Assembly (NCBI GenBank): GCA_965112735.1
Contig: OZ218965.1
Location: forward strand, 1,984,001 to 2,048,000
Length of the DNA: 64,000 nt
Source: Phaeosaccion multiseriatum
Taxonomy: Eukaryota > Protista > Ochrophyta, other classes
Direction of reading: 5' to 3'
This document shows positions 1-46,789 of the stretch, in pieces. The position numbers and the translations under genes were made by a program. The notes below the pieces were generated by a model. It ran no database searches. It had not been told where the DNA came from and saw nothing but the letters and a program-made list of their open reading frames with translations. Position 1 is the first letter of the stretch; each line of letters begins with the position of its first letter.

Positions 1-2970
1 GAGTAAGCATCGATAAGCAAGCAAGTCGAGGGAAACAAACAAGTGGAGGAGGCCACGGGTTGCTTAGGACGGAGGAAAGGAACGAGCGAGGCATAACAGT
101 GCTGTTTATTGTGGTTGGAGGCCCGGGCACACAGCATTGGGTGGTTTGTGTCATAAAACGCGCCCGTGGATACTCCGAAAGAACCATGGCATGCGGATGG
201 TGACAGAAGCAACAGATAGATTTTGGCCAGGCGGTAGGAGCGAAGCAAGCAACTGGTGGTGCCTGATACTCACATTACAGGACTGAAGGCCTTCGCAGGT
301 GGCGGACGACGAGTCCACAAAAAAGCCATACTGTGTGGCGTAGAAGAGTAGTAGGAGAGGGGGGGTGGGAAGAGCAGAGAGCAGGACAGGAGTTCGGAGG
401 GCGTAAGAGGCTTCTTGCTGCCGTGCAGGGCAGGCACGAGCAAGGCACCGAAGGAGCGACTTGGAGACGAGCAGCGGCAGGACAGGGGGGAGGGAGACAC
501 GGACATCATGGCACTGACTGGGCACGCCGCGAGAGCGGAATTGCTTGTTTTGCTGCCACTCGTCCTCACCATACAGGAATAAGGGCCTTCGCAGGAAGCT
601 GTCGAGGCCTCATTAAGCATGATGTACTTGTATGGTGCAGAGAGTAGCAGAGGGGGGGTGGGAAGAGCGGAGAGCAGGGCGGCAGTGAGAGTGCGTAACT
701 AAGGCTCGGAAGGGAAGAAGGCACTGGAGTAGCGAGAAGGGGCGAGCAGGAGCAGGTAGCGAGCATTGCCACAGCAAGGCGAAATCAAGACAAGACGGCA
801 AAATAGAGGACCACGGCTTCGAGGTTAGGCCTGCACATGGGGCGGAGATGTGGTCGAGCACTGCGCCACCCCGGGCCACAGCATCGACCGAGAAGAGCAC
901 GGCATGAGCAGCCAGCACAGGCAGCAAGAGGGAGACACAGACTTGCTGGGCACGCTGCGATGGGACTTATTGTCGTGCCCTGTCTGCCCCATTCTCACCG
1001 GACAGGAAAAGGTGCCTTCGCAGGAAGCCGAGGCCGTTTCCCACAAACTGGTAGTCTGTGTGGTGTAGAGAGTAGGAGAGGGTCGGTGGGAAGAGCTGAG
1101 AGAGATTGACTTCAGAGGGGTGAAAGGCTTGCTTGCAGCCAGGCAACAAGGCACTAGAGGAGCGAGAGAGACGAGAAGGAGGTGCGTAGCGCATCGGCAT
1201 TGCCACAGCCAGCAGGGCGAAATCAAGACAAGACGGCAACACAAGAGGAGGGGATAGAGCGAGAGATACCATGGCTGGCTTCGAGGTTAGGCAAGCGCAT
1301 GGGGCGGAGCAGGCAGGAGGGGACAAGCAAGCAAGGACAGGAAGTGGGCGAGCAGCCACTGCGCCAGCCACCACGGGCCATAGCCTCGGCCGAGAAGAGC
1401 GCTGCATGGGCAGCACAGGCAGCACGAGGGAGACACAGACTTGCTTGCTGGGCACGCCGCGATGGGACTTGTTATTGTCGTGTCCTGTCTGTCCCATCCT
1501 CACCTCACACGCCAGCTTAGCAATACAGGAAGCAGAGGTAGTGCCCCGAAAAACGGCGCCCTGTGGAAGAGCGGAGAGCAGGACGCGGAGGTTCAGAGGG
1601 TGTAAGAGGCTTGCTTGCAGGGAACAAGGCGCTGGAGCGCTGACCGAGAAGACAACAGACGAAGGCTTGGAGGCATATGGGGGGCAAGGAAGAGGGGAGG
1701 GAGGCAGTCGAGGAGCGCTGCAACGCCATTACTTCCTCCAACTTGTTGACCTCACAGGCATCTCCCACACCCGACAATCAACCAGCCACCCAACGAGAGC
1801 AAGCCTAGAGCATTCGCATCCGCAGTTCCTTTGGGCGTCTGCCCACACAGTGACATGTAGGAGTACTCACCCTGCAAGACGACTCTTCCGTACATTGGAC
1901 GGCACAGTCCTTCACGAGTCGACGGAGACGCGGTGGGGAGGAGGGGGTCGGAGCGAAGCAGCAGTCCATATACGCGTACGCACAAACGCGACCAAAAGAG
2001 AGGCATGGAGAGGAGAGAGAAGGGACGTCAGTGAGCAGGGCTCTGAGGAAGACGCCAGGAGTTAAAGAGCCTCCCCACCGGTTGTAGGTAGCTCGGGTTT
2101 GATATGCAGACAGTCCGGCACCTGTCGTGCCCTCCCCGTCCTCTTCCTCCCTTCCCACCCCTTCTCCTCCTCCCATTCCTCCAAGGGCGGGTGACAGTGG
2201 CAACACTCACCACGAATGTGACGTACTGACAGGTGGCAAGCAAGTCACGGGCAATGAGCCACACAGCCAGTCCAGCCGGCAGGATGAGGCGGAGCAGGCC
2301 CAGTAAGGTGGCAGAAGATGCAGGCCATTACCGACGACAGCCCCAGGGGTGGAGGGAAGCAAGGAAGCACGGCAGGGCGGGGAAGAGCAGCGCAAGGCCA
2401 CCAGGAGGGAGTGCCAGAGAAGGCTGGGTAGGTAAGCACTTGACACAAGATATAGCCAGGAAACAACACAGCCCCTTCAAACAGGAGAGTGGGCCAGCCG
2501 TTAGCTACCGCCCCGGTTGGGGGCGGGGGGGAGCGACAAGGTCCCGACTCAAGGGGACGAGGTGAAAGAATGATGAGCGGGTACCCACCTTGCAGGTCAC
2601 TCCGGTGCAGATGATGGGATTGGCTTCATCAGGAGAAGCGCAGGTGCAGGTACCGGCAGTGCCGGAAGTCAAGTCGTACCCTCCCTCTCCGGTGCAGACA
2701 TCGTCCAACACTGGTCCACGGCAATCAAATGCCATAGGAAAAGGAAAGAAGTTGTTTCGGGACAGGAGGAGGAGGAGGACGAGGAGGAGGAGGTTGTGAT
2801 GGTGGTGGTGGATGAGGAGGAGGAGGAGTTGAGGCCGAAGGAGAAACGTGGGTCCGCTTAGACTGTACTCCTTCTCTACAACCTTCGCTGATGGGGGTGG
2901 ACTGCAACTCCTGCACCAACAAGCCCACCACGAGCAGCAGTGGGCGGAGACGCGAAGAAGAGGACTTCAT
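1..2970 (-). CDS. Paralogue (copy A) of the secreted Cys-rich micro-exon protein; 3' end lies beyond the left window edge; may be a pseudogene
   Basis: ATG at 2970 gives MKSSSSRLRPLLLVVGLL (signal-like). AG/GT-bounded exons: 2710-2589, 2225-2211 (YVTFV), 1909-1871, 1560-1504, 1055-999, 626-570, 330-274. 1-2550 is near-identical to 9430-11890. The original exon-1 donor is deleted; only a weak GTTGTA donor at 2882 would keep the frame. Confidence 0.65.
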
Positions 2971-4000
2971 CTCCTGGTGGCTGGGTGTGGCTGAGGAGGG
3001 CGAGTCAGGCAGGAGGGAGGAGGAGACCGGAGGAGGGAGGAGGCAGGGGCGGGGGTAGCATCGTTGATCAGCAGGCAGGAGCGAGCCTCTCAGCCCAGCC
3101 AAGCAAGCAAAGCAGTGCAAGTCAAACAAGCACACCAACACGTGGGCACCAGGCCAGGGAACAGCTAGTTATGGTCGCTCTCATCACCAGATAGACAGGC
3201 CCACTCAGGAAGCCGTCTCTTGCAGTGGCACGGGACTGAAAGAAGGGCCACGCACAAGCAACAGCCAAAAACAACAAACAAGCAACAAGGGCCAGCAGCA
3301 TTTCGGGACTGCCTGTTGTCACTGGCCCACCAGCAACAGCAGGCAGAGGATCCCCCCTTTCATCTCTCTTACCTTCTCTCTCCTTCTTGTGTCTCTGTCT
3401 TGTTGATCCCTCTCTTCCTCGCTTCCTTGAAGTAAGCAAGCAAGACCCTACGAATTCGGAGTTTCAAATGGCACGGACAAGGGGCGAGGAGCACTTGCGG
3501 GACCAGGAGCGAGGAGCAGCGGCAGCAGCAGCAGCGACAGCAGCGACAGCAGCAGCAGCAGCTGCAGCCCGAACTAAAAAGAAAGGTCGTAAATGCGAAA
3601 CAAAAAAAGTGTAATGGTAAAGCAGCGGGTTTGCCCCCTCCGACGGCGGCCTGGCTAATTAGATTATTAGAGGCGGCGAGGGTGCAGCATACCTTCAAGC
3701 GCATGAAGTACTTCCACACTCTGCCAAGGGTAGAGGGCTTAAGATAGAGGGCGGGGCGTGATAACACCATCGAAATTGTCTTACACTTTCCCTCGGTTCA
3801 GGGTTCAGGTGTCACAGACCGGCTCAGCCAGGGCTTCAGCAGCTGTAGGAGGGGGGGCAAAAGGCCGCGCAAAGGCACCAGAGGGACACTTTAGTTCGTA
3901 TTCTGCGCCCTACAAGCGGGGGAAGTACGTGTGGAGGAGGAAAAGCGGCAGACAACGGAGACAGTGGCACTAGAGAAGAGAGGAGGGGCAGAGAGAGAGA
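2660..4000. repeat. Segmental duplication of the 5' end and upstream region of the micro-exon gene (matches ~15545-16945)
   Basis: Long collinear matches, e.g. 3696-3790 vs 16667-16760 (gcgcatgaagtacttccacactctgccaagggtagagggcttaagatagagg) and 2930-3035 vs 15970-16080. Confidence 0.9.
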
Positions 4001-4015
4001 GAGCGAGCGAGGAGG

Positions 4016-6250
4016 ATGAAAGCAATAGGAGGGAAGAGGAGAGAGAGCAAGATATCTGTGCGGGTGGAAGCGGAGAGGAGGGGAGTACACATAATGCGGG
4101 CACAATCAGAGAGACGGCAGCTGGGAAAGGGGAGTAAGAGTGGAGTGACGAGGAGATGGAATGCAACAGCTTGTAAGGCATTAGATGAAGCTGAGGCAAG
4201 CCAAGCTCGTCAGCAGCAGCTAAAGGAGGCCATAGCTGTCGCTGACGCTGGCTTAAATGAGCTAAGAAAAAAGCACGTTGGGAAGCCAGGCCGGTAGCTA
4301 CACCGCAAAAGAACGAGCACAGAAGAACGCGCTGGCAGGATCAGTGACGGAACGCCAAGGAGAAGGTAAGATTCTGATTCTACCCTCCGTCCCTTCCTCC
4401 CCCCCCCCCTCCCGCCCCCCGCACCTCCCCTTACTTCAAGCGCCTTAATCTCCTCTCCACAATTCCCCCCCCCACCCACCCCCCACCCACCCTCTTGTCT
4501 CCGACGTGCATCACCTCCAAGCGTCTCCTCCCAGGGGAGGTGGAGAAGGTGCAGGAGCTGACTCCAAAGGTTCAGCAGGATCTGCTCAAGGCGGCTGGAG
4601 GGGCGCGCGCTAATCGCCACTCTGGTCCTGCTCACGTTCCGAAGGGAAGACTGCCTGCCGCAGGAGAGATGGACCGGCCGCCGCCAACGAACACCAGGAG
4701 GGAGAGGAAGAGGAGGAGGAAGGCCGTGAAGAAGGGCGAGAAGCGGCTGAGGTTGACGCTGTGGACCCCAAGTACCGCAGAATGACAGCGGCACAGGAGG
4801 AGTTCAACACGCAGACGAGGGACAAATGGAAGAAGGGAAAGGGCACATCATCGAAGGTGAGGATGCTATCAGCCGCGCGCCTTACACTGTGATGCTCTTC
4901 TCTCTTCTCTCCGTCGTACCTCTGCAGAATGCTTGCTCACTGCTGGCTCCACGCTCCCCTATCCTCATGGCTGACATTGTTTCAGGGCTCCCGATACTTT
5001 CATCCCTCGGATCCCCTCGCCTGCCGCGTATGGCACCCGCTCCGTCTACTTCGTCTACTTCTACTCTCCAGAGGTGGACAGCGATGTGCATGTCTGCAGA
5101 GGATGTGACAAAGGGGAAGAATACGTTGCCGTGTTCTACCTGCGGGTGGGAGGCAGCTGAGGTGGGGAAGGTTACGAGGCACGGCTACACCGAGTAGCAA
5201 GAAGGCCATCCGCATTGTGGGAGTGGAGGACCACACATACCTCATGAGCACTCGCCACTACTGCGCGTGGTGCAAAAAGGAGGCAAAGCGTGGCCCCTGA
5301 CATGCTTCTGAGACACGCCAGCCCAGAAGCAGGAAGCAGGCCGGCTGGCGCCGGCCAGAAGCAGGAAGCAGGGTCGCCTCAGAAGCATGTCAGGGGCCGA
5401 CTACGAGGAGGAGAAGAGGAGGATTTGGAAGGACAAGCAGTATACCTTCTCCGCCTACAACAGCCGCGTCACACGCCACCTCGTGGCACGATTCCCGTGG
5501 GTGGCAGCCAGTCGGGCTGCCGGCCGGCCTTCATTGTTGGGGAGGGGCTTGCACAGCAGTGAGCCAAGGGCTTGCACAGATGATCTTGCGGCATTGCTCC
5601 AGCGGCGGTAATGGCTGGCCACGGACTATCCAAGAATTTGGCGGAGCTCCGAGCAGAACAGTTTACTCGGGCGCAGATACAGTACTACGGGGCTGCGGTG
5701 TGCACAGGGAGTACGAAGTGGCCTGCCGCGGGAAGCAGCGGAGGCCAGCAGAAGGATATGAAGGACTTTTTCACAAGCGGTCGCACGGTCAATGAAGGAG
5801 GCGCGAGCAGCGGCGCGGATGGAGCTCAAAGAGACCCATAGTCGTTGAGCCCCTCACGACGCAGCTGTACGGGGCGTACACGCCCGGCCATGGGCTCGTG
5901 CGGCGGATCTTCAAGGAGCTCACGCAGATGAGGTACGCTGACATGTGCAACTGGCGAGCGTCCACGATAGGAGGCACCACGGTGGCCACTGATCACAGCA
6001 TGAAAATTGCCAAGGATGCTGAAGAAGAGGGCGCACGAGCAGGAACCAGTCAGCTCACGGCGTTTTCAAACGCAGTCAATGCCCCTCTGAGTTGTGGGAT
6101 TGTCCAGTCTTTCGGAGTAGTGCTTGGTGACGGACTGGTCGACGGCACGGGAGCTCATGGATCAGCATGGTGGCAGCATATAAGAGGGATCACCGATTTG
6201 TTGGAGAGTTTGTGCGCTATCGAGAATGTGGGCGATTATATGCATATTAT
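4016..6250 (+). pseudogene. Frameshifted remnant of a DUF6729-type putative DNA transposase gene
   Basis: Broken frames give LPCSTCG...AIRIVGVEDHTYLMSTRHYCAWC...FSAYNSRVTRHLVARFPW...LAELRAEQFTRAQIQYY...VATDHSMKIAK. From memory this resembles DUF6729 plus the DHxxK motif of transposon-associated proteins. Several stops and frameshifts. Confidence 0.4.
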
Positions 6251-6713: not shown

Positions 6714-9700
6714 TCAGCGACCACCGGACTGCGCGGCCTCCACACTGCAGCTGCGGAGGGACGCGCCCGTGACCACGAAGCTTCCCTCCACTGCCGCGCC
6801 CTTAATGCCGAATGCGCTTGGGAGGAGAATATCGTCCACCACAGCGCTGACGCTGCACGTCGTAGGGCCCGTGCTATCGACGGCACACGCCTGCTTGGCC
6901 AGGAGTGGGTAGGCGCCTCCGTCTTGCTGTATGTACACCTCCACAACTCGCTCCTCGCCGGCCTCAATGGCGGCGACTGTATACGTGATCGTGTACACCT
7001 GGCCGGCGACGGGGATGTCCAAGGCCTGGTACAGCTGCATGTGCCAATCCCTTTCCGCCGCCGTCTGGACGCTGTACAGGGCTCCGCTACTCGTGGCGGT
7101 AATGCTGCCCTCGAGGGAGGTGTCGGCGGTCCTGACGTATGTGTTCCAAGATTCCAGGCCGGCGTCGAAGTCCGGGTTGGACAAAAGGTTGGCGGTGCTG
7201 GAGGGGCAGCTCAGGGGGGGCTCCGGCGGAGTCACACACAGCGCGGCCCCCGTCAGAGTGTACTTCCCCCCCTCCTCTCTGGCGGCTTCGTGCTCGAAGC
7301 CGAACTTGATCGGCACGTTCACGTCGTCAAGCACCGCGGAAGCCGTACACACCGTTGTCGAGCCGAACCCCCCGGGCTCACCAACGGAGCACTTTGTCCT
7401 GCCGAACACGTCATACAGGCCTCCGTTCTGCTGGATGTACGCCCGCCCGGCGCCTCCCTCGCCAGCCGCGGCCTCCATCACAAAGGTCAGAGTATACACT
7501 TGCCCGGAGACGCGCACGGCGACGGTCTGGAAGATTTGCATGTGCCAGTCGCTCTGGCCAGGCGTCTCGATGTCGAACAAGGCTCCGCTGCCCGCGTCCG
7601 TGATGCTCCCCGCGAGGGAGGTGTCGGTCTTCTTGACGAAGATTGACCAACGCTCCAGGCCGCCGGCGAAGCCCGGGTTACGCAAAAGGTTCACGCTGCC
7701 AGCGGGGCAGATCGGAACCGGCAGGACGGGCGGGACTGTGGGGTCTGTGGTTGGGACTGTGGACAGCGAAGATTGTCCATACATCCAGGGACATCGGGGG
7801 GGGGGGGCAAAAAAACAAAGAGGTATGAGGGCGGAAGGGGGGCATGTTAAGCGGCGAAGGTAGGGACCAGCGCAAGGGAATAAGGCGGAAGCAAGCAAGC
7901 TCCGCGATTACAACTGATCAAGCAGCAGCGCCGCCAGCGCTCACACACTCACCGACGAAAGTGTAATCGGGGGCTCGTGTGTCGAGCGCCTCGTCCAGCA
8001 CGACATCCGAGTGTCGGGTGAGGAGCACGGTGGTGCCCACGATGGCGGCCCGGTTGCCCCTGTTCTTAATGCGGATGCTGCTCATTTGGAGGCCAGGGTT
8101 CAGGTTGAACGTGAACGTCAGCGACCCTCCATTCCCGCTGACACCGCAGAAAGAGGAGTCGTCCCCGTCGTCGCACTGGTCAGGCGTCTGCGAGGCCGGC
8201 GGTGGGCCGCTGGCTATGATGGAGGCGGGAGGGATCTTGGCGCCGTCTTGGTCGAAGGCCGTGACTTCCCCCAGCTGCAGCGACTTGTCGCTCGGGGATG
8301 CGATGACCAGCACATACTGGGCTGTTGTTGCAAAGAAAAACACCCACAAGCGGAAACAAGAGGCAGAGATGAGGCGAGGGGGGCGGTGACGAAACACACG
8401 CAAAACGTAAGAAGAGGCCGTGCGCTGGACGCTGGTGCGTGTGGACAGATGGACGAAGCAAGCAAGGCCCAGGAAGTCCAACCAATCCTTGCTTCAGGTG
8501 CTTTCCGCGCCTTTATGCCAGGCAGCGGCCAGGCAGCAGAGGCAGCGTCTAGCTAAGCCCGTGGGGGACGTCCACAACCTCTACAACCTCCCTCAGTCAT
8601 GCACTGACAAGTTTGGGCGCTTGCGTGCTCTTACCTCCACACTTGATGGTGTCAGCGGGGCTATTGGTGTTGCAAGCAAGGCCGAAGGGGGCGCCGGGGG
8701 GTGCAGAGGCAGGGAAGGAGTGAACGGCAGGCAAGCGAGAATGAGGAGGCGACACACAAGGGGGCGGGCGGGATGACGAAAGAGAGCCAGTGCGAAGGAG
8801 TGGGCAATAGGTGCTCGTGCGGTGGGAGGCACAGGCAGGGCCGTGAGATAAAGGGCCATGATGGCCTGGTTACGACGTGCACACCCCGCATAGTCAGCTA
8901 GCTCTACCTGCGACAACGTACCAGTACGGACCGCCACAGCATGATGCTGGACTGATGTTCTGTTGGTCAAGGCCGAGGGAAGAGCGTGGCAGAGAGACGG
9001 ACGGTTACAATGGTATACTCACTTAGCCCCCACCCTGCCTCTCGTCTGCCATGACAGCCCCACCCACCTGGATAGAATCGCAGGCCTCGCTAGTCTCGCA
9101 CGTTACCGAGGCCTGCTGGTACAAGAAAGGACGCTGCAGGGTGCAAAGGTTGGGGGGGGGGGGGGGGGCACGGCGAGAGCAATGCAGCAGCCAGTGGAAA
9201 GCATTGCTTTTGAGGAGGGTGGCATCAAGTGCTGAAAGCGCTGCCTGCATCATGGACCAGTAGTGTAATCGACTTACAGTGCACGAACGTCGCCCGCTGC
9301 ATGTCACGTGAGCGGTGCACTCATCTGCTTCCCCGTAAGAGCTGCTGGAGGTGGCACTCAGCGTGGTAGGGCAATCCTCCACCATATCACAAACTTCCAC
9401 TCCCTGTGGAGCGAAAAGCAGTGAGTGACAGAGTAAGCAAGCAAGTCGAGGGAAACAAACAAGTGGAGCAGGCCACGGGTTGCTTAGGACGGAGGAAAGG
9501 AACGAGCGAGGCATAACAGTGCTGTTTATGGTGGTTGGAGGCCCGGGCACACAGCATTGGGTGGTTTGTGTCATAGAACGCGCCCGCGGATACCACTCCG
9601 AAAGAACTGAGAAAGGAGACACCATGGCCAGCGGATGGTGACAGAAGCAACAGACAGATTTTGGCCAGGCGGTGAGAGCGAAGCAACTGGTGGTGCCTGA

Positions 9701-12700
9701 TACTCACATCACAGGACTGAAGGCCTTCGCAGGTGGCGGACGACGAGTCCACAAAAAAGCCAGCCTGTGTGGTGTAGAAGAGTAGGAGGGGGGGGTGGGA
9801 AGAGCAGAGAGCAGGACAGGAGGTCGGAGGGCGTAAGAGGCTTGCTGCCGTGCAGGGCAGGCACGAGCAAGGCACCGGAGGAGCGACTTGGAGACGAGCA
9901 GCGGCAGGACAGGGGGGAGGGAGACACGGACATCATGGGCACGCCACAAACTTGTTTTGCTGCCGCTCGTCCTCACCGAACAGGAAAGAGTGCCTTTGCA
10001 GGAAGCTGTCGAGGCGTTATTAAGTATGATGTACTTGTGTGCGTGGTGCAGAGAGTAGCAGAGGGGGGGTGGGAAGAGCGGAGAGCAGGACACCAGCAGT
10101 GAGAGTGCGTAACTAAGGCTCGGAAGGGAAGAAGGCACTGGAGTAGCGAGAAGGGGCGAGCAGGAGCAGGTAGCGAGCATTGCCACAGCAAGGCGAAATC
10201 AAGACAAGACGGCAACATAGAGGACCACGGCTTCGAGGTTAGGCCTGCACATGGCTGGGGCGGACATGTGGTCGGGCACTGCGCCGCCACGGGCCATAGC
10301 ATCGGCCGAGAAGAGCACGGCATGAGCAGCACAGGCAGCAAGAGGGAGACACAGACTTGCTTGCTGGGCACGCCGCGATGGGACTTGTTGTCGTGTCCTG
10401 TCTGCCCCATACTCACCGAACAGGAATCAGGGCCTTCGCAGGACGCCGAGGCCGTTTCCGCCAAACTGGTATCCTGTGTGGTGTAGAGAGTAGGAGAGGG
10501 TCGGTGGGAAGAGCTGAGAGAGATTGACTTCAGAGGGCGTAAAAGGCACTCTTGCCACAGCCAGCCAGCAGGGCGAAATCAAGACAAGACGGCAACACAA
10601 GAGGAGGGGATAGAGCTAGAGCATATACCACGGCTTCGAGGTTAGGCAAGCACATGGGGCGGAGCAGGAGGGGACAAGCAAGGACAGGAAGTGGGCGAGC
10701 AGCCACTGCGCCACCACGGGCCATAGCCTCGGCCGAGAAGAGCGCTGCATGGGCAGCACAGGCAGCACGAGGGAGACACAGACTTGCTTGCTGGGCACGC
10801 CGCGATGGGACTTGTTTTTGTCGTGTCCTGTCTGTCCCATCCTCACCTCACACGCCAGGAAAGCAATACAGGAAGCAGAGGTAGTGCCCCGAAAAACGGC
10901 GCCCTGTGGAAGAGCGGAGAGCAGGACGCGGAGGTTCAGAGGGCGTAAGAGGCTTGCTTGCAGGGAACAAGGCGCTGGAGCGCTGACCGAGAAGACAACA
11001 GACGAAGGCTTGGAGGCATATGGGGGGCAAGGAAGAGGGGAGGGAGGCAGTCGAGGAGCGCTGCAACGCCATTGCTTCCTCCAACTTGTTGACCTCACAA
11101 GCATCTCCCACACCCGACAATCAACCAGCCACCCAACGAGAGCAAGCCTAGAGCATTCGCATCCGCAGTTCCTTGGGGCGTCTGCCCACACGGTGACATG
11201 TAGGAGTGCTCACCGCGCAAGACGACTCTTCCGTACATTGGACGGCACAGTCCTTCACGAGTCGATGGAGATGCGGTGGGGAGGAGGGGGTCGGAGCGAA
11301 GCAGCAGTCCATGTGCGCATACGCACAAACGCGACCAAAAGAGAGGCATGGAGAGGAGAGAGAAGGGACGTCAGTGAGCAGGGCTCTGAGGAAGACGCCA
11401 GGAGTTAAAGAGCCTCCCCACCGGTTGTAGGTAGCTCGGGTCTGAAAGGAGACAGTCCGGCACCTGTTCGTGCGCTCCCCGTCCTCTTCCTCCCCCCCAC
11501 CCCCCTCCTACTCCCATTCCACCAAGGGCGAGTGACAGTGGCAACACTCACCACGAATGTGACGCTCTGACAGGCGGCAAGTCACGGGCAATGAGCCGCA
11601 CAGCCAGTCCCGCCGGCAGGGTGAGGCGGAGCAGGCCCAGTAAGATGGCAGCAGATGCAGGCCATTACCGACGACAGCCCCAGGGGTGGAGGGAAGCAAG
11701 GAAGCACGGCAGGGCAGGGAAGAGCAGCGCAAGGCCACCAGGAGGGAGTGCCAGAGAAGTCTGGGTAGGTAAGCACTTGACACAACATAGGCAGGAAACA
11801 ATACAGCCCCCTTCAAACAGGAGAGTGGACCAGCCGTTAGCTACCGCCCCGGTTGGGGGCGGGGGGGAGCGACAAGGTCCCGACTCAAGGGGACGAGGTG
11901 AAAGAATGATGAGCGAGTACCCACCTGGCAGGTCACTCCGGTGCAGATGATGGGATTGGCTTCATCAGGAGAAGCGCAGGTGCAGGTACCGGCAGTGGTG
12001 GGAGGCGAGTCGTACCCTCCCTCGCCCGTGCAGAGATCGGCCCACACAGGGTCAGGACCGGGAGTTGAGGGGGACGTGGGGGAGGGGGTCACGGGGGAGG
12101 CTGGTGGTAGTGGTGGTGGTGGGGGAAGAGGTGGTGGTGGTGGTGGTGGTGGTGGTGGTGGTGGTGGTGGTGGTGGTGGAGGTGGTGGTGGAGGAGGCGG
12201 AGGAGGAGGAGGAGGAGGAGGAGGAGGAGGAGGAGGAGGAGGCGGAGGCGGAGGAGGAGGAGGAGGAGGAGGAGGAGGAGGAGGAGGAGGAGGAGGAGGA
12301 GGAGGAGGAGGAGGAGGAGGAGGAGGAGGAGGAGGAGGAGGAGGAGGAGGAGGAGGAGGAGGAGGAGGAGGAGGAGGAGGAGGAGGAGGAGGAGGAGGAG
12401 GAGGAGGAGGAGGAGGAGGAGGAGGAGGAGGAGGAGGAGGAGGAGGAGGAGGAGGAGGAGGAGGAGGAGGAGGAGGAGGAGGAGGAGGAGGAGGAGGAGG
12501 AGGAGGAGGAGGAGGAGGAGGAGGAGGAGGAGGAGGAGGAGGAGGAGGAGGAGGAGGAGGAGGAGGAGGAGGAGGAGGAGGAGGAGGAGGAGGAGGAGGA
12601 GGAGGAGGAGGAGGAGGAGGAGGAGGAGGAGGAGGAGGAGGAGGAGGAGGAGGAGGAGGAGGAGGAGGAGGAGGAGGAGGAGGAGGAGGAGGAGGAGGAG

Positions 12701-15700
12701 GAGGAGGAGGAGGAGGAGGAGGAGGAGGAGGAGGAGGAGGAGGAGGAGGAGGAGGAGGAGGAGGAGGAGGAGGAGGAGGAGGAGGAGGAGGAGGAGGAGG
12801 AGGAGGAGGAGGAGGAGGAGGAGGAGGAGGAGGAGGAGGAGGAGGAGGAGGAGGAGGAGCGAGCAGCGCACACACAGACGCTCTTACCTTCACACAGATT
12901 GAACGGAAACTCCGATGGAACCAAGACGCCTCTGCTATAGAAGTCGTTGCTATTGGTGTTGCACAGTTGCACGGGGGGAGGGGGCACGCGTGACGATGAA
13001 GTACGAAGGGAGGGGGGTTCACTATCACTGTCGGCGGGTCACTGTCACTAACGCGTTTGTAGAGTGCAGTAGCGGCCTGGCACGGCCTAGCTACGCGGGG
13101 CAGGTCGAATCAAAAGTCTACGGTCTGAACTGCCTGGGACAAAAACTTACCATAACTGCCCTTCGCAGCATGATGTTGCACTAGCCGTCTGTTGGTCAAG
13201 GTCAAAGTGGAGTGGCAGAGCGAGTGGCAGAGAGCGTAGGAGACAGGTTGGCTGGTTAAGGGTATTGGAAACACTTGTTGCCCCACGACAGCCCTGTCCC
13301 ACCCACCTCGAGAAGCTTGCACGGATTGTCGTATATCGGACTGTCGAAGCCCCTCTCGCACGTCGCGGAGGACCTTCCGTACAAATCGACCTCCTGTATA
13401 GGGTGGGCCAGGCCAGCCAGGGCCGAAGACGGGGCGAGTCGAGGCATAAGCGACACGACACGCAGAGCGCCAACCAATAACAGTGTCAATAACAGCAGCC
13501 AACTACACGGTCGGGAAGGGCATTCTTCTGGTGCTGCTAGCAAAGGGGTGCGTCACCCCCGCTGTCCCCTCTCTCTTGCTCGGTGCAGCGAACCGACTTA
13601 CATTGCACGAAAATGGGTCCCTGCATGTCAAGTGAGCGGTGCACTCCGGGTCCTCCCCTCCGGTCGCAGTTATACAAGCTTGAGCGTTCTGTGGAGCGAC
13701 GCACAGGGAGGGACAAAGTAAGCAAGCAAGCAAGGGTGTTCAAGCCCCACCAAGAGGCTACAAACGAAAAGGGAGGAGACCACGGGTTGCTCAGGGCCGA
13801 TCAAAGAAACGAGCGAGGCATAGAGGTGATGCAGTAGTTCGAAACGAGGCCGGGGATGAGTAGTAGCTAAGGCCAGGCAAAGGGAGGAACAAGGAAATAA
13901 CACCATAGGGCCAGAGGAGGTATGGCCAGCCAGCGGATTGTGTTAGAAGCAAGAGGCAGATTTTGGCCAGGCGGTGAGAGCGAAACAACTGGCTGGTGCT
14001 GACTGATACTCACGGTACAGCCTGCAAACCCACTGCAGGTCACGGTCGACGAGCCCCCAAAAAAGGCACGCTGTGTGATGAAGAGAGGACGAAGGCGTTG
14101 GGGAGAGCAGAGGCAGGGCACGACAGGAGGTCGGTCGGGGGACGTAAGAGGCTAGCTGCCGTGCAGGGCGGGCACGAGCAAGGCACAGGAGGAGCGACTT
14201 GGAGACGAGTAGCGGCAGGACAGGGGGGAGGGAGACACGGACATCATGGCTGGGCACGCCGCGAGCGCGAGAGCGAATATGCTTGTTGTGCTCTCTCTTG
14301 TCCTCACCTGACAGGAGGCAAGGTCTTCGCAGGAAACTGTCGAGTCCTCAAATGTGGCATCCTGTGTGGTGTAGAGAGTAGCAAAGGGCGGGTCAGGAGG
14401 AGGTAGCGCATCGGCCTCGCGCCCTCCCCTAGAGGAGCTGACCAAGAACACAAACGAAGGCTTGGAGGCGTATGGGGGGCAAGGAAGAGCAGGGGAGGGA
14501 GGCAGTCGAGGAGCGCTGCAACGCCATTGCTTTCTCCAACTTGCCCCCACCACAGATCATCTCCCACACCCGACAACCAACCAGCCAACCACCGAGAGTG
14601 AGCCCTGTAAGAGGCGGTACAAGAGACTGGGAGAATACCAGAGGCACAGGCATCCGCAGTTCGTTCGTGCGCCTCCTGCCCACACGATGTGTTGTAGACT
14701 AGGTAGGGCTCACCGAACAAGACTGCGCATCTGTACATTGGACGGCGCAGTTCTTCACGACGGGTGGGCACACGCGGTGGTGCGGTGGCGAGGAGGGTCC
14801 GAGCGAGGCAGCAGTCCACGTGCGAGCACGCACAAACGCGACCAAAGAGAGGAGGGATGGAGAGGAGAGAGAAGGGCGATAGTGAGCAGGACTTTGTGGA
14901 CTACCGCCAGTAAGCAAAGAGCCCCCCCACTGGCCGCTCTCGTTCCCGCTAGCACAAGTAGGGGTGTCAAAGTAGCGGCAAGGGGTGACGCTGGGGGTGG
15001 CGACCCGGCAGGGCTTGCCTGTTGGACTTACAGCCGCGCAGGGCGAGACAGACACACCCCTTAATGCGCCCTTCCTCCCCTCCTCCTCCCTTTCCTCCGA
15101 GGGCAACACTCACCACGAAAGTGACGTCCTGACAGGCGGTAAGTCACGGGCAATGAGCCGCACAGCCAGTCCAGCCGGCAGGATGAGGCGGAGCAGGCCC
15201 AGTAAGATGGCAGCACATGCAGGCCATTACCGACGACAGCCCCAGGGGTGGAGGGAAGCAAGGAAGCACGGCAGGGCGGGAAGAGCAGCGCAAGGCCACC
15301 ATGGGGGAGGGTAGGTAAGCGCTTGACACAGATTGGCAGGAAACAACACAATCCCCTTCAAACAGGAGAGTGGACCAGCCGTTAGCTACAGCCCCGGTTG
15401 GGGGCGGGGGGGGCGACAAGAAGGTCCCCCCGACTCAAGGGGACGAGGTGAAAGAATGATGAGCGAGTACCCACCTCGCAGGTCACTCCGGTGCAGATGA
15501 TGGGATTGGCTTCATCAGGAGAAGCGCAGGTGCAGGTACCAGCAGTGCCGGAAGTCGAGTCATACCCTCCCTCTCCGGTGCAGACGACATCGTCCAACAC
15601 TGGTGGTCCACGGCAATCAAATGCCATAGAAAAAGGAAAGAACAAGTTGTTTCGGGACAGGAAGAGGAGGAGGACGAGGAGGAGGAGGTTGTGATGGTGG

Positions 15701-32823: not shown

Positions 32824-35800
32824 ATGTTTCGAGGACCTGCTGGGCTGAGCTCCCCCATTCGAGTGGGTAGACCTTTCGAGGGCTTTGCACCCGGCTCTGC
32901 CCCAGCAGCGGGGGCGAGCTCATCACGATCATCGTCAGTTAGAGGACGGAGGAGAGACACGTCGCCAGAGAGGCTTATAGCACAGAACAACTCTTTGCCT
33001 CTGCTCTTTCGGAAGCATGACTTCCGGCCCCTCTTCGACGCGAGCGCAAGCACCAGAACCAAGGCCTACCGGGCGGCCTTGCGCTCTGCAGCACCCTCCT
33101 CTGCGTCGTCGCCGTCGCTCTTCCAGGCCTCTTTCCCCTTGGACATGTACGAAGCCGCAGGAGCCTCGCAGTCACGGCCATCCACAGGGTACGGGGGCCG
33201 TGCGAAGGGCCAAGGGAACAGAGGAGGAGGCGTAGGGCCGACCATGGGCGTAAATGCCATGTTTCCGGATGCACACAGCCGGGCAGCGTCTGGAATCAGA
33301 AGGGACGCCAGAGGAGGACGGGGAAAGGATGGGGCAGGGCCGAACGAAGGGGGTGACTTTCAAGTGAATGGCAGCAAGTACCCGGAGACGGGTCAGCGGC
33401 CCATGACAAGCGTGGGGAGGGCCAGATACGAACCTGGACAGCAACGGGAGCAGGAGCAGGAGCAACAGCAGCAGGAGGAGGAGGAGGAAGAGGAGGAGGG
33501 CAGGGGGGAGGAAGAGGATGATGATGATGAGAAGTGGGGCTATGCCATCTCGCAGGAAGAAAACAGGGAGGAGTACAGGGAAAAGGAGCAGGAAGAGGGG
33601 GAGGAGGGTCAAGCATCCTACAACGACGATGACCTCGCCTCTACTCTCTCCGTAGGCTATGGGGAGCGCCCGCACACGAGCCCGACGCAGGAGCTACACA
33701 TGATGAGCAGCGACTACCGCCGCGGCCACAGCACCAGCACCAACAGTCTGTACGCTCCTCCTGCGGCTCCGAAGCCAAAGCCCTGGGAGCCGCAGGACAG
33801 CGCGAGGGGGGGCATGGGAACCGTACTGCGCTTCCTCGCCTACACGGTCGAGAACAACGAGTACAGCTTCGATGGCTCGGATAGGACGCGAGTGAGGGAG
33901 CTCATGATAATGTACTACCTCAAGGACGGAGAGATAAGCATCGTTGAGCCAAGGAAGGACAGCACGGGGCTTCTGTGGGCGAGCACGATGAAAGGGTGAG
34001 TCACATGGGGTCGTGGGGTCTTGTCACTCAGGCAAGGCAAGAAACAAAGGCAGAGAGGGAGGCCGCCGTGGGCACCGGAAGGCCAAACAAGAAACTCGGA
34101 AGGCTGCTGCTGCTTGCTTTCAAAGAGCGAGTGGGTGGGTGGGATACAGTCATGCCACAACACACAGCCTTACAAAGCGCACTAGCGCTGCTGCTCCAGT
34201 GCTGCCGAGCGACCAAGCCCCCCCCTGGCATCCTCAATTGCTTCCCTTCCTCTTCTTCTTCTTCTTTCTCTACTCTCCCTCTCTCTCCCCTGCTGCTTGC
34301 TTCCTCTTCCTTCCCTACCCCACCCGGGCCTGTCTCCTCTGCCTATCACCCCCCCACCCCACCACAGCGGGCTGGGCTCTCTCCGACGCGGAAAGGTGCC
34401 CAGAGCGGACGGCAGCGGTACCTTCTACGAGCTGAAGGACCTCACAGTCGGCTCGCGCCTGCTTATCTACGGTAGAGATATTACCGTGGTGGATGCGGAC
34501 GAGTACACAAGGACCAAGTGCGCAAGAATGGGTATCCATCTCGAGGAGGGGATACCCATTCCGCAGGTGAGTGGATAGCTATGTGTATTGAGTATTCGTG
34601 AGGGGGTTGAGTTGGGTCTACGCGCCGCACCTGGGGCTAGCTACAGTGCCGCTTGAGCAAAGAATGCACGCACACACGCGCATGCACTCACTCACTTACG
34701 CACACACGCACACACACACGCACGCACGGACACACACACAGGATGAGTTCAGTGCTGCGAGAGGAGATGCCTCCACCCATGGGGCGGTGCTGGGAGGGGG
34801 GTGGGGTGGAGGGGGAGGCGGAGGAGGACAAGTCCAACGACCCGACACCCGGTACTTCCGTAAGACCAATTTTATGACTCAGTACGCGGAGTCCCTGGGG
34901 GGCAAGCCGCCGCCGGACAACGGCAAGGCACGGCAGTTCCTGGCCCACCCCAGCAACTCCCCGGGGGGCGTCCTGCGCTTCTACGCCGTGTGGGACGACA
35001 GACAGCGTTTGTTTGGGGACGTGCATCGCCTTGTGCTGCTCTATTTCCTCTCGGACGACTCCATGGAGCTGCTAGAGAGGCATGAGAGGAACTCCGGTTA
35101 CGACAGGTGCGTGCGTGTGTGCGTGTGGGTATGTGCGGGCATGTGTGTGTGTGCGTGCGTGTGTGTGGGTGGGTGGGTGCGTGCGTGGGTGCGTTTGTGT
35201 GTGCGTGGGGGCATGTGCGAGCGTGTGTGCGTGATGGGTGTATGGGGGCGTGGGGACGTGGGGACGTGGGTGCAGGCGTGCGTCGGTGCTTGATCCGCTG
35301 AGCGGCGTACAAGTTGGAAATGGAGGACAATGGCGGTAGAAGGGCCGTTTTTTCAGGGGTGGCAGGGCCGTCTTTCAGAGACTGTCCTCTGTTCTCGTAG
35401 ACCGGAATATGAATATGCTGCCTTCCCCTCTCTTCTCTCCGACTTCACACAAAAGGAAAGGCCAAACATCTCATCTCGTGAGTCTATCTTTCAATCTCTA
35501 CCTCTCTATCTCTCCACCTACCCCGTGACGTCATCATGGCCCTACGCACAGATGGCCGAAGCTGTTGAGGCGTATGAAGGTCCCTCGCGACGCCTACTCT
35601 ACAGATGACGACGCCGCCACCGTCCAGACGAGCCTCTTTCCTGAGGACGACGGAGCGGAGCCCTCTCCCTTCAACCCTCACTCCATCAAGTCGGCTTACA
35701 GGGGCCATGGGCAGCCGCACTGGGCCGAGCAGCGTCAGGAGGCCGAGGAGGAGGGAGGCACGGTGGTGAGTGGCTTTGGAGTCTATGGAGGATTTGCCGG

Positions 35801-37205
35801 GAGCAGCAGCGGGGGAGGAGGGGACTTTGGCAGTCCCTTCAACCCCCCTGGGAGCGCCAACAGCCCCCCCGGGAGGGTGTGGGGCCAGGCTCAGAGTCAC
35901 TCCTTCTCCGCTTCCCGTAGCCCGCCTCGCACCCGCAGCCCCAGATACGCTTCTCCTCCTCCTCCCAATCATCATCATCATCATCATCATCATCACCATC
36001 ACGGGGCCGGCAGCAACAAGTTCATGACATGGAGGGACGTGGTGGTGGGGGAGAAGCTCAGCTTGAACCAGTTCGAGCTGCTCGTGGTGGACGCCGACCC
36101 TTACACCAGAGACTTCATCCGACGGCAGACGGGGAGAGAGTGCGTGCCACCCCTTGTGGAGGACGAGTATCCTGATGCTTGCCACGCGCCGCCCCTGTCC
36201 GCAGAGGCAAGTGTCAGGATGACGCCGCCCAGCCCCGGTAAGATGGGTAGTAGTGGTGGTAGAGGCGGTGTTTGTAACGGGCAGATGTCGTCGTCGTCGT
36301 CCCAACAAGGGAGCCAAGGCCAGCAGCAAGGGGCGGGGGAGGCGCCCTTGGTCTCGACGATGAAGCAACGCGGGAAGAAGGCAAGGAAGGAGGACTGGTA
36401 CAAACCCACCGTAGGCAACTCCGGAAACACGCGCCTGCGGTTCCAGCTCAAGCTCAGTCGGGCCAGCAGCAGAGTGCAGGCGAGTAGGCTCTTTGTGCTT
36501 GACTTCTTCCTGGAGGACGGATCGCTCCTCTGCACGGAGATTGAGCGCAAGAACAACGGCTTCCCGGGGGGCAAGTTCCTCCGCCGAAACAAGTACATCA
36601 ACCCGGAAACCGGCCGAGCCTTTACAGCTGGCGACCTCGAGGTGGGCAGGGAGCTCACTCTGAATCACCACTCGTTCATGGTGGTGGCCGAGGACCAGTT
36701 CACCTCCAACCACAAGAGAGACGGAGGGGGGGGTCAGCAGCTCTATTTGGGGCTGGGCCAACAAGGGAGGAGCCTCGAGGAGGAGGAGGAGGAGGAGGAG
36801 CAAGAGAGGGTGAAGACCATAATGACGACGGCATCGCCAGCTGCGAATCAGACGCAGACCCAAGCCTCGTCACCATTGTCATCGCCAGACCATACGGCGG
36901 ATTGGACTCTGTCGGAGTCCCCGCCCGCCCTCCTCGCAAAGTTCAGAGAGATTCTCAGTGCGAGAGAGGGCAACCTGACACAGATGTTCCTCAAGCTGGA
37001 CGACAACGGCAACGGCAAAGTGGAGCTGAATGAACTCAAGCACTACGTTCGGCTCTACTACCCCGCCATCTCAGAGAGGAGCATCGAGGAGCTGTGGGAT
37101 CTGATGGACCCCGAGGGCAAGGGGGGTCTGCTCATGTATGACCTCGTGGAAACCCTCTGCGGCCCAAGAAGGGCACGAAAAGTCATGGAAAGCATTCTGA
37201 ATTGA
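32824..37205 (+). CDS. EFHC1/EFHC2 (RIB72)-like protein: three DM10 domains plus C-terminal EF-hands
   Basis: DM10 motifs VLRFLAY..YYLKDGEISIVEP, VLRFYAVWDD..YFLSDDSMELLE..RNSGYD, RLRFQLKL..FFLEDGSL..NNGFPGGKFL; EF-hand DDNGNGKVELNE. Exons ~32824-33995, 34368-34566, 34742-35106, 35551-37205. Confidence 0.85.
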
Positions 37206-42054: not shown

Positions 42055-44826
42055 ATGGACTTTAAAGATTTTTTTGCTAACCTTGGTAAAGCTGCCGATG
42101 CTGCCGCCGCGGCGGACGACGCGGCAGCCGCGGAGAGCGCAGAGAAGACCAGCGGCAGCCAAAAGGGGATTGCTGCTGGGGGCGGCAAGGCGGGGGAAGC
42201 CTCCTCCGTCGCGGGGGAAGAAGCAGAAGGAGAGGGGGCAAGGGTGTTGGAGGGGGCGATGAAACCATCCGCAGTAGTAGCAGCGGTGGCAGGAATGAAG
42301 AGAGCGGCATCACCGGCGTCCTCGTCGTCGTCCGTAGTGGTCGCCATGGGAGGCACAACAGAGGACGGCGGCAGCGGTGGCGTGCGCCTGCAAGGCTTTG
42401 AAGTGCAGTACAACCTACGTAGAGACAGCTCTCGGGTGTTCCGCCAACCGCAATGCGACGCCGTGGCGACCTTGCCAGAGACACCACGGAGAGGCGGGCC
42501 CTGCGGACAGGGCCGACTGATTGCTGCCAACGACAACTTCATTTGCTACGTGATCAAGTCCAACATTCGGTTGATCCACAAGGACGAGGGGGCGCGCGCT
42601 CTGCTGAAGTTTGACGTGGCGGTGGACGGGGTGCCCTTGGACATGGTGCTGTTCACGCCCCCGGAAAATGGCAGTGGAGGGGCGGGGCAGGGACAGCTTT
42701 TGGGAGCAGTAGGGTCGGCAGGTGAGGCATCAGAGAGAGAGAGGGAGAGAGGCAGAGAGAGAGGCGGAATAACAGGCAGGCGGCAGACGGGCAGAGAGAT
42801 TGGGACAGCAGCGGGAGGCGAAGAGAGGAAGGGGCTGCTGCTCGTATCCGTTGGCCGTGCCCCCTTCGTGTCCATCCATGTGCTGCTGCTTGTCAGCAAG
42901 GTGGCTTCTTGCCGCTTGCTCAAGACATGCAACATGCATCAGTGTTGCTCACCAGTATCGCTTCTCCTCCGTGTTTCCCTCTGCCTCGCCTCGCTTTGGA
43001 TTTGATTGAACGACCTGCCTGTGTCCTCGTCCGTCTCGCTCCTCCACACAGGCGAGGTCCTGGTATGGCGGCTGTTTGAGCGCCCCTCAGATGCCGTCAG
43101 TCAGGGCGCCGATCTCATCGGGCACTCTCGCCTGCTGCGCACCACGGGAGCAAGCGCACAGAGGCTGTTGTGGCACCCCCGCTGCAGCCACTGGGCGGCC
43201 ATTATCTCTGGTAGCGAAGTGGTCATTTGCAAGCTTGGCTCGGCCGAGCAGGCAGGGGAGGACGGCGGGGAGGGGGGAGGTAGCGTCAGGGAGCAGGAAG
43301 TGACGGGCCCGAGGTGCAGCGGGCATACCGCGCAAGTCAACGATGCGAGCTTCCACCCCTGCGGCGACTTGTTGTTCACGGCCGGAGAGGACGGCTTTGT
43401 GCGGGTGTGGGACGTTGCCTTCGTTGCAGGGAGTGGCGGCAGCAGCAACAACAGCCCGTCAGTCGCTTGCCTGCTAAAGTTCCAGCCCTCGGAGGGGTCT
43501 GCGGTGCACCGAGTCCTCGTGCCCCTTCCTGCCTGCCCGGACGGCAAGTCGACTACCTCGACGGGCACCGTCCCGCTCATCAGCGGTAGTGCCATGAACG
43601 GAGTGCTCAAGGTGTGGCATGTGGAGGAGCGAACGCAGGCTGTGCTCCAGCAGACGCTGAGTCTTCGAGGCAGCAGCAGCAGCAGCGGCTCGCCCAACCT
43701 CATCTCCCTCGAGCTGGACCCCTCGGGGATGTTCTGCTTCGCCGCTTGCTCGCAAGACAACCTCCTCTATGTTCTGCACCTGCGGGAGAGCATCGGCAGA
43801 AGGCGCAGTACCAGTGGTGCTACACAAGGTGGTGGTAAGGACGACGCCAGCGGCGGTCTGGTCCCGCGGACGCGCTTTGACTACCTTCAGCCCTTCAATA
43901 TTATGTGCCCCATCCTTAGCTGCGTTGTGCTGGCGGCGCGTCCCGACACCCCGTACGGGTACATGGACGAAGAGGAGGTGAGCGAGGAGCTCCACGCCCT
44001 GTGCGTGCAGACCAAGCCGGTGCAGATATACAAGTTCCCCAAGAGCGACCTCTACCCGGGGGCCGATGGCAGTGGAAGGACTCGCAGCGTCAGCCCCCCT
44101 CCTCCTCTCTCTGTCTCTACTGTTACTGCTCCTGCTGCTGTGGAGGCAGGAAGTGGAGGAGAGGTAGGTGAGGAGAAGGAGGCAGGCGGCGATGCAGCAG
44201 CAGTAGCAGCTCCACCAGCCCCTGAAGAAGCATCCAACGGGCCCCTTGCCCTGCTCCAGAGACCTCCTTCCGTGCTGCTCACTCCGGGTCTGCTCGCGGG
44301 TGGGGGCACAAGAGAAGGAGCAGAGCAAGGAGGGGCGGGGAGGGGGGCTGGTAACCAGGCCTCCGCCGCCGGAGAGGGGGCAGAGGAGAGCACACAGCAG
44401 CAGAACCAACAGCCGCAGGAGCATCAGCAGCAGCAGTTGGTGATACAGCAGCAAGACCGGCAGCAGCAGGTGGCCTCCGTGTCAGTGTCTGAAGAGCAGC
44501 AGACGGTGGGGGTCAACACCACGGAGCAGGCGGCGCAGAAGCGAACCGAGTCCAAGGAGGGGGCTGCTGGGGAGCCCTCCTCCAGCGGTGCTGCCTCGCT
44601 TATGGCCATGCTCAACATAGGAGGAGGAGGTGGTGGGGATGGAGGTGGCGGGAGTGGGGATGTGAGTAGGAGTAGCAACACCGATCAGGAGGAGCTGCAC
44701 AGCGGTGCATCGAGCGGTGCCGCTACCGTCAACGGCCTTCCCAGTAGCAGCAGCAGCAGCGGCGGCGGCGGGCGGGGGGTGAGCTCGAGTGGGGACAATG
44801 CCACAGGGCAGGGTAGCAGAGACGAA

Positions 44827-44858
<32 letters not shown>

Positions 44859-44863
44859 GCAAG

Positions 44864-44942
<79 letters not shown>

Positions 44943-45806: not shown

Positions 45807-45840
<34 letters not shown>

Positions 45841-46575: not shown

Positions 46576-46618
<43 letters not shown>

Positions 46619-46728
46619 TCCGTCGGCAGCGCCAACAGGACCTCATGCGGCAGGAACACATGCTGCAGCAGCAGCAGTTGGCGGCACAGCAGGAGGCCGC
46701 CCTCGCCAAGCAACGACAGCAGGAACAA

Positions 46729-46789
<61 letters not shown>

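Follow-up and report, generated by a model that had tools for sequence, protein, structure and literature searches.

The ochrophyte alga Phaeosaccion multiseriatum has a genome assembly (GCA_965112735.1) of 67 Mb in 22 contigs with ~59% G+C. The window analyzed here is a stretch of 64,000 nucleotides (nt) from this assembly, positions 1,984,001 to 2,048,000 of contig OZ218965.1, and features are numbered from its first letter unless another contig is named. At the start of the window lies gene A, a minus-strand gene with mostly very short exons, four of which encode one 19-residue, two-Cys repeat unit each. These exons differ from their counterparts in a tandem paralogue, copy B, more than the introns do, and the excess is specific to amino acid-changing sites. 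The pattern may reflect diversifying selection on outward-facing positions of the encoded repeat.

Gene A encodes one repeat unit per micro-exon

Phases and splice sites were followed through the window and through a further 10 kb fetched upstream of it, which yielded a complete model of gene A. The gene has 13 exons, canonical GT-AG splice sites and 1,764 coding nt, which encode 587 amino acids without a stop. From N to C terminus, the predicted product comprises a signal-peptide-like hydrophobic start, Cys-rich 19-residue repeats with two Cys each, a Pro/Thr linker and two CBM_4_9-like modules. Eleven of the 13 exons are 15 to 122 nt long, and six (E3 to E8) are in phase 0-0.

The coding part of exon 1 (2883-2970, minus strand, as are all exons of copies A, B and C) begins with the ATG at 2970, encodes the signal-peptide-like N terminus and ends in phase 1; the full open reading frame (ORF) was assembled from this start. 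Exon 2 (2589-2710, 122 nt) is Cys-rich in translation. Its acceptor is backed by a contig of run X5 that crosses the intron 1 splice 2710|2883 (CT..AC on the plus strand, GT..AG on the gene strand) with no mismatches. Although no run was recorded as RNA in a search of the available runs, X5 behaves like RNA; the intron 1 splice is the only one in gene A that it confirms. Next come a 15-nt exon (2211-2225) encoding YVTFV between a CAG acceptor and a GTGAGT donor, and a 39-nt exon (1871-1909) encoding a short two-Cys unit.

The four exons that follow, E5 (1504-1560), E6 (999-1055), E7 (570-626) and E8 (274-330), are each 57 nt long, with a CAG or AAG acceptor, a GTGAG donor and an open frame 0. 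Each corresponds to exactly one unit of the form x-A-x-F-x-[DG]-x-S-x-A-x-C-x-G-x-x-S-C-x, with Cys at positions 12 and 18. The intron following E8 fills positions 1-273, and beyond the window lie four further small exons and the last exon with the two CBM_4_9-like modules.

Gene A has a tandem paralogue and an older relative

Self-comparison of the window identified three related modules, A (1 to ~4050), B (9434 to ~12050) and C (13930 to ~17000). Module B is the 3′ half of a neighboring gene in tandem with gene A, and the two have in common all exons from the 15-nt exon onward; the splice sites of the gene A model are kept in both. Alignment with A placed the copy B counterparts of E5 to E8, with their introns, at 10847-10903, 10417-10473, 9977-10033 and 9708-9764 (span 9708-10903), and the 15-nt exon (11552-11566) and 39-nt exon (11214-11252), with the intron between them, in the span 11214-11566. 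Three-way alignment and phase tracking located the downstream small exons of copy B at 9278-9403 (126 nt), 9068-9112, 8922-8959 and 8635-8660. Its last exon (6714-7756), which served as an internal control, encodes a Pro/Thr linker and two CBM_4_9-like modules. The second of these matched Pfam CBM_4_9 (PF02018) at 40.9 bits (cut-off, 25.9), and the first matched DUF4627 at 30.2 bits (cut-off, 24.9). The CBM exon protein of copy A is 98% identical to that of copy B. Copy C is an older module with two rung exons, 14308-14361 (54 nt) and 14014-14070 (57 nt), versus four in A and B. A sequence-only reading of the window had noted that the 15-nt exon starts with Y, S or D in the three modules, and the translations agree: YVTFV in A, SVTFV in B and DVTFV in C (15114-15128, by alignment with A and B).

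Introns that follow different rungs are also alike. The starts of the introns at 1367-1503 and 10283-10416, and of those at 859-999 and 10704-10847, are 84 to 92% alike over ~140 nt, and the exons that they follow are unrelated outside the core. This cross-rung likeness (after E5 and E6), together with two rungs in C versus four in A and B, fits growth of the repeat by duplication of an exon-plus-intron unit.

Copy B has features of its own. A 369-nt exon in phase 1-1 (7953-8321) is absent from gene A, and the A/B alignment jumps there from 7903 to 8628. It had no Pfam match, and by eye it has the look of a lectin- or discoidin-type domain. Copy B has CTG in place of gene A's exon 2 acceptor CAG (~12047). 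Between C and B, at 12076-12863, is a CCT-type tandem repeat of ~790 bp, which on the gene strand gives poly-Pro when read in the exon-2-like frame of copy B; the frame of the 62-nt exon before it gives poly-Ser/Thr and reaches a stop at ~12052. With the acceptor lost and the repeat in these frames, reading C and B as a single gene would require a long intron ending at an AG near 12017, or read-through.

Copies that are 95% alike could in principle be an assembly error, or two haplotypes placed in tandem, and short-read contigs do break at the differences. Reads from three DNA runs (X1, X3 and X4) argue against this. Read-derived contigs matched copy A without mismatch over all four 57-nt exons: X1 1444-1730 for E5, X4 918-1085 for E6, X3 483-662 for E7, and X1 126-306 and 277-511 for E8. 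Their depth equaled that of single-copy flanking sequence (~95-123 versus 87 in X1, ~510-580 versus 482 in X3 and ~92 versus 90 in X4), while stretches common to A and B had about twice the single-copy depth. B-type letters were recovered separately, at the E5 codon in both X3 and X4 contigs. These results indicate that A and B are true paralogues, neither haplotypes nor an assembly slip, and make an artifact extremely improbable as the source of the differences between them.

Repeat exons diverge more than introns

The sequence-only reading had proposed, from a hand comparison, that these micro-exons diverge much faster than their introns. Its counts were reproduced. The four 57-nt exons differ at 25 of 228 bases (3, 9, 10 and 3 from E8 to E5), and 15 codons are changed, 14 with an amino acid replacement and one silently (GCT/GCG). 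In none of the four exons do the two Cys or the S-A-x-C core vary, and the multi-base codon swaps AAG/TTC and TTT/GAT are both present. The three differences in E5 fall in a single codon (AAG/TTC, repeat position 15), and the three in E8 are confined to the first and last codons. E6 has 10/57 differences with five amino acid changes and the silent one, and E7 has 9/57 with six amino acid changes. Between intron 1561-1870 and its counterpart 10904-11213, 6 of 310 positions differ, with no gaps.

This intron proved to be the most conserved of ten. All ten together differ at 125/2727 positions (4.6%; range, 1.9 to 10.3%), so that quoting the lowest value had overstated the contrast. The excess itself stood: exons E3 to E8 differ at 29/282 positions (10.3%) versus 78/1816 in the six flanking introns (Fisher P = 1e-4), and they also exceed the ten introns as a whole. 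Its size is ~2.1- to 2.4-fold by bases and 1.8-fold by events, which is beyond chance but smaller than the contrast first described.

Divergence is unevenly distributed among the exons. E6 and E7 rank in the top 2 to 5% of 57-nt intron windows, and the excess is carried by three or four exons, mainly these two and the off-window 120-nt exon of gene A. The latter differs from the 126-nt exon of copy B at 17 aligned positions and by 9-nt and 3-nt in-frame indels. Exon 2 of gene A is nearly identical to copy B except for a 12-nt patch with 6 differences (LTSG versus SPPT), and this patch and the 120-nt exon behave like the fast pair E6/E7. In the 39-nt exon, 2/39 bases differ, both in the final codon. 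In several exons the differences end at the exon edges on both sides, with intron flanks diverged by 3 to 7%. Over the pair as a whole divergence is patchy, from 1.2% in the CBM exon to 1.9 to 10% in introns.

The excess is specific to amino acid-changing sites

For the four 57-nt exons, the Nei-Gojobori method gave 2 synonymous differences at 56.3 sites and 23 nonsynonymous differences at 171.7 sites, a dN/dS ratio (omega) of 4.06. A pairwise maximum likelihood (ML) codon model (F3x4) gave an omega of 5.3 (likelihood ratio test P = 0.007), and all 169 repeat codons gave 2.4 (P = 0.027). Thus, dN/dS exceeded 1 on the A/B codon alignment. In the four exons, nonsynonymous divergence was well above that of introns (Fisher P = 7e-6) and synonymous divergence was not distinguishable from it (P = 1.0). 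Silent sites (2/56) and clean four-fold sites in unchanged codon families (1/32) were equal to introns. Since silent sites are at the intron level, the excess is specific to sites that change amino acids. The CBM exon of A and B behaved differently. With 12/1041 differences, it had a dS of 0.0195 and a dN of 0.009 (omega up to 0.46) by Nei-Gojobori and an omega of 0.37 by ML, values that indicate purifying selection on this exon.

The replacements are also restricted to particular positions of the unit. A family consensus was derived from 57-nt exons elsewhere in the genome (61 distinct peptides), and its entropy was high at positions 1, 3, 5, 13, 15, 16 and 19. Replacements between A and B track this positional entropy (Spearman 0.84, P = 8e-6). 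At these seven positions, 22/84 bases differ in a hand count over the four exon pairs, about six times the intron rate. Structural positions (A2, F4, S8, A10, C12, G14, S17 and C18) changed at or below the background rate, as did silent sites, introns and the CBM exon. The rung exons carry a 3- to 7-fold excess of amino acid-changing differences, often as two- or three-base codon replacements.

A roughly six-fold elevation over introns at the variable positions is more than relaxed constraint alone can supply. This bears on the idea that one redundant copy has been relaxed or has decayed after duplication. The duplicate is recent and in tandem, gene A is without the exon at 7953-8321, and copy B is without the exon 2 acceptor, all of which would suit decay. 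Both frames are nevertheless intact through all common exons, exon indels are multiples of three, every Cys and core residue is retained, and the first two exons of gene A were seen spliced in the RNA-like contig. We consider decay highly improbable; even taken together, decay and artifact are a very unlikely account of the data.

Each 57-nt exon probably encodes one beta-helix turn

Single exons had no Pfam match. The spliced 89-amino-acid segment of gene A matched Pfam DUF7640 (PF24646) at 16.1 bits (E = 0.014), below the gathering cut-off of 28.1. An exhaustive phmmer search with this segment against 1.84 billion representative sequences returned 12 public proteins, the best being P0001 (E = 2.2e-14), with P0003 at 1.8e-9. 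P0001 comes from a diatom transcriptome, another match from a foraminiferan transcriptome and the others from meta-assemblies. These relatives score higher against DUF7640 (P0001, 36.6 bits; P0003, 144; P0007, 99), P0006 also passes the cut-off, and they have the 19-residue two-Cys period over 3 to 6 consecutive units. Nine exons of the window were aligned, with C12 and C18 invariant, and hhalign matched this alignment to that of the relatives in register (E = 3e-5).

One relative, P0012, provided a structural model. phmmer placed residues 4-88 of the segment on P0012 154-238, and an AlphaFold (AF2) model of P0012:145-239, built from a 13-row alignment of five-rung segments, had a predicted local distance difference test (pLDDT) score of 97.8; its strands fall on rung positions 3-4 and 9-12. 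An exhaustive structural aligner matched the model to TibA (4q1q_B; Z 11.8, root mean square deviation 2.1 Å, 93/95 residues); Ag43, Hap and RTX beta-helices ranked next. As five rungs span 95 residues in the match, TibA likewise has 19 residues per turn. A Foldseek search of the same model against PDB found nothing at E < 0.001, and TibA was found only by the exhaustive aligner. By the in-register alignment with the beta-helix of the relative, one 57-nt exon very probably corresponds to one rung. A2/F4 and S8/A10/C12 would then face inward, and we infer that positions 1, 3, 5, 13, 15, 16 and 19 face outward.

Periodicity and the model of the relative thus point to an outward placement of the variable sites. 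Alignment-free folding of the window segment itself produced an unusable model (pLDDT 39) with weak strands every 19 residues. The spliced segment had no match among sequences of solved structures, and an Atlas feature search returned sub-threshold clusters only, none of them named. The CBM exon had no match in the protein collection, its own protein included; proteins of this genome seem to be absent from that collection.

Other arrays show the same pattern, with closely similar introns

The motif C-x-G-x-x-S-C-x followed by GTRAG occurs 211 times in the genome, versus 26 times for a reversed control, and forms arrays with 240- to 430-bp spacing on several contigs. Divergence was tested family-wide in five other arrays, using 23 disjoint unit pairs with flanking introns less than 12% apart. 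Introns differed by 0.043, and the proportions of synonymous (pS) and nonsynonymous (pN) differences were 0.093 and 0.145, respectively. Nonsynonymous divergence exceeded that of introns (P = 6e-27) and of synonymous sites (P = 0.03), and synonymous divergence exceeded that of introns (P = 9e-4). By position, divergence peaked at 16 (0.52 per base) and 15 (0.33) and was zero at both Cys. Over all unit pairs within arrays, introns were 1 to 5% apart, four-fold sites 7 to 14%, exons ~20% and amino acids ~36%.

Close introns combined with diverged four-fold sites suggest that intron and exon histories are decoupled within arrays, either by homogenization of introns or by exchange of exons. At the level of the family, then, one or the other of these processes contributes to the contrast. 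Concerted evolution would take this further: gene conversion or unequal crossing-over would keep introns and silent sites alike, and older differences at surface codons would survive through selection or mismatch barriers. Besides the decoupled histories, the cross-rung likeness of introns in A and B and the patchy A/B divergence fit this account, and homogenized introns that delimit repeat units are known from spider silk genes (PMC9779670). Three observations stand in its way. Silent sites within the A and B rung exons are as alike as the introns; contiguous tracts could hardly homogenize codons 8-14 and 17-18 and yet spare 15-16 in several exons; and selection for difference would still be needed, so that the account differs mainly in the age of the changes. 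As the main cause of the A/B pattern, concerted evolution seems rather improbable.

Intron similarity is array specific, which argues against a common functional intron element and against mobile introns. Introner-type mobile introns were considered and rejected on this ground and on the invariable position of the intron at an identical codon boundary.

Several arrays have further features. Large arrays of one-rung exons lie on contig C3 (5089923-5102026) and contig C2 (5885387-5891793), and their rungs are rich in N-x-S/T sequons. The C3 array has a higher-order repeat of ~1.15 to 1.2 kb (4 to 5 rungs) in at least 8 copies with identical exons. Elsewhere on contig C2 (3292106-3301676), 302-bp units are near identical but for the last codon and the six bases between the Cys (GAGACA, GGCTAT, GATCAC or GGGGCA). 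These units are the clearest case of a two-codon hot patch.

The rung surface may be under selection fed in part by short exchanges

We favor diversifying selection on the outward-facing rung positions, with variation supplied in part by short exchanges between rungs, and give this reading a probability of roughly 55%. It best fits the comparison of A with B, in which silent sites equal introns, replacements are several-fold higher, differences stop at exon edges and the CBM exon is constrained. The rung surface would be under positive selection, as the changing positions would point outward. Short templated exchanges between neighboring rungs, which have a 15-nt identical core in common, may supply part of the variation. 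Near-identical introns and symmetric exons would keep the frame intact when rungs are duplicated, lost or exchanged.

A number of points weigh against selection as the cause. The ML codon model has no multi-hit term, and multi-base codons inflate omega; 9 of the 15 changed codons have two or three differences, versus 2.5 expected from random placement. The comparison of nonsynonymous with synonymous sites was marginal by Fisher's test (four exons, P = 0.048; all repeat exons, P = 0.11). When adjacent mismatches were merged into events, exons (16/282) exceeded introns (86/2727) by only 1.8-fold (P = 0.036), and the divergence of E5 and E8 (three differences apiece) does not exceed what a 57-nt intron window typically shows. 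The A/B test compares two sequences over 76 to 169 codons, and the reads come from one sample plus one low-coverage run. In the other arrays, silent sites are above introns (pS of 0.093 versus 0.043), and four-fold sites more so (0.14 versus 0.05). The outward-facing assignment derives from the periodicity of the repeat and from the model of a relative. Finally, contigs of X5, the one RNA-like run and one of low coverage, contained no splice joint across the 57-nt exons, whose splicing consequently rests on sequence logic and homology. On this last point, the public protein matches of the spliced segment (E = 2e-14 and weaker) extend over four exon junctions and retain the 19-residue period, in support of the modeled splicing.

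The multi-base codons are also what a non-adaptive process might leave. Here, short conversions, "segment switches" or multi-nucleotide mutations beside the core would strike exons and persist at unconstrained positions. Multi-base changes are frequent in the other arrays too (24/55 codons), silent divergence is above that of introns family-wide, and short identities link non-corresponding rungs: A-E7 and B-E6 have in common an exact 15-nt stretch that spans a variant codon, and B-E6 and B-E7 have in common their last 15 nt. Accelerated segment switch in exons (ASSET) in snake toxins is a comparable phenomenon, its mechanism unexplained, in genes with introns more than 85% alike (PMC2711939). 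Imported patches should, however, bring silent differences with them, and A/B silent sites are not raised. The differences also stop at both edges of several exons. A hunt for donors of the variant patches by exact k-mers found only 15- to 18-nt matches, all within the A/B/C cluster and too short to prove conversion, and no donor elsewhere emerged when the whole genome was searched at the DNA level with these exons. Fixation at 3 to 7 times the background without selection would require a very high conversion rate. A purely non-adaptive origin is conceivable but unlikely. The sequence-only reading had left the choice between diversifying selection and exon-targeted conversion; omega above 1, intron-level silent sites and the CBM control favor selection, and the multi-base codons and 15-nt identities keep conversion in play.

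Another hint, and no more than that, is that E6 and E7 seem to have traded positions 15-16 reciprocally between copies A and B; it depends on 3 versus 5 differences in 15 nt, which is not significant.

A bolder view of the family is that it is a system for diversification by rung cassettes. Introns would serve as substrates for recombination or conversion, and perhaps as elements of splice choice; rungs would be duplicated, swapped and skipped in frame, and the two-codon patch between the Cys would be replaced wholesale. We regard this as speculative and doubtful. If true, the alga would have secreted surfaces for recognition or adhesion in a combinatorial repertoire, with a logic like that of variable surface or receptor systems in parasites and animals.

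Relation to known systems

Exons that evolve faster than introns are textbook material for venom toxins and for some parasite and immune genes but not for free-living algae. The kind of pattern reported here is known: secreted, disulfide-rich multigene families such as venom toxins and schistosome micro-exon genes (MEGs) have exons that change faster than their introns and a dN/dS above 1. What is new is the algal host, the probable Cys-stapled beta-helix of a DUF family with one rung per symmetric micro-exon and fused to CBMs, and a fixed two-codon hot spot in each rung.

The closest relatives by sequence, the DUF7640 proteins of protists and algae, are alike in their 19-residue period, in two Cys six residues apart and in alternating small and hydrophobic residues before the Cys. 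The gene A product differs in scoring below the family cut-off, in its fusion to CBM_4_9 modules and in having every rung as its own exon. TibA, Ag43 and AIDA-I type autotransporter adhesins would resemble it, as judged from the model of the relative, in rung length (19) and in handedness class, which is right-handed. Identity to these proteins is 10%, with no sequence similarity, and the algal protein is eukaryotic, with predicted secretion by a signal peptide and two Cys per rung that presumably form a disulfide staple. The TibA match thus points to a common fold, not to common ancestry or function.

Snake venom toxin genes show accelerated evolution and ASSET, the mechanism of which is unresolved (PMC2711939; PMC6062510). 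They too are secreted disulfide-rich multigene families with exons more different than introns and with short, radically replaced patches directed to the surface. In contrast, the host here is an alga, each exon would provide one rung of a beta-helical repeat scaffold, and the hot patch is a fixed inter-Cys codon pair in every rung; no likeness in toxicity is implied. For schistosome MEGs, accelerated protein evolution has been reported (PMC4350168). MEGs are alike in having secreted products and runs of very short symmetric exons, and they differ in that MEG exons are not structural repeats and have no sequence relation to the exons described here. The hallmark of MEGs is protein variation through skipping of such exons. 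In a MEG, most of the coding sequence lies in short symmetric exons, whereas ~60% of that of gene A lies in one large last exon (1043/1764). In flagelliform and Argiope MaSp spidroins, the similarity of introns between repeat exons is higher than expected, and a role in unit duplication and unequal crossing-over has been proposed for them (PMC9779670). Closely similar introns are a common feature, but silk exons are homogenized too, whereas the exons of the algal arrays stay or become different. No relevant report on Cys-repeat genes with micro-exons in green algae came up in literature searches.

The algal genes show with unusual clarity what the unit of change is: a micro-exon would be one Cys-stapled turn, and each turn has its hot spot at the same two codons. 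This makes them a tractable system for two questions left by the venom literature, namely, how surface patches are replaced so fast and whether homogenized introns are passengers or tools. The analysis also attaches a probable fold and an evolutionary behavior to the Pfam domain DUF7640. Standard gene finders probably miss genes of this kind.

Neighboring sequence

A separate expressed gene lies just upstream of gene A. At 3869-4857, a 1,182-nt contig of the RNA-like run X5 represents a transcript spliced on the plus strand, its GT..AG intron lying at 4363-4518. Between this transcript and gene A, at 3508-3674, contigs of all four runs reached ~20-fold the depth of the flanks and had many CAG/CAA-rich loose ends, as for a dispersed simple or low-complexity repeat. 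Farther along the window, an uninterrupted ORF of 1,409 amino acids (43006-47235) has EDC4/Ge1 WD40 and C-terminal domains. Two ORFs at 32824-37205 have DM10 domains like those of the flagellar proteins Rib72 and EFHC, suggesting that the organism is a flagellate.

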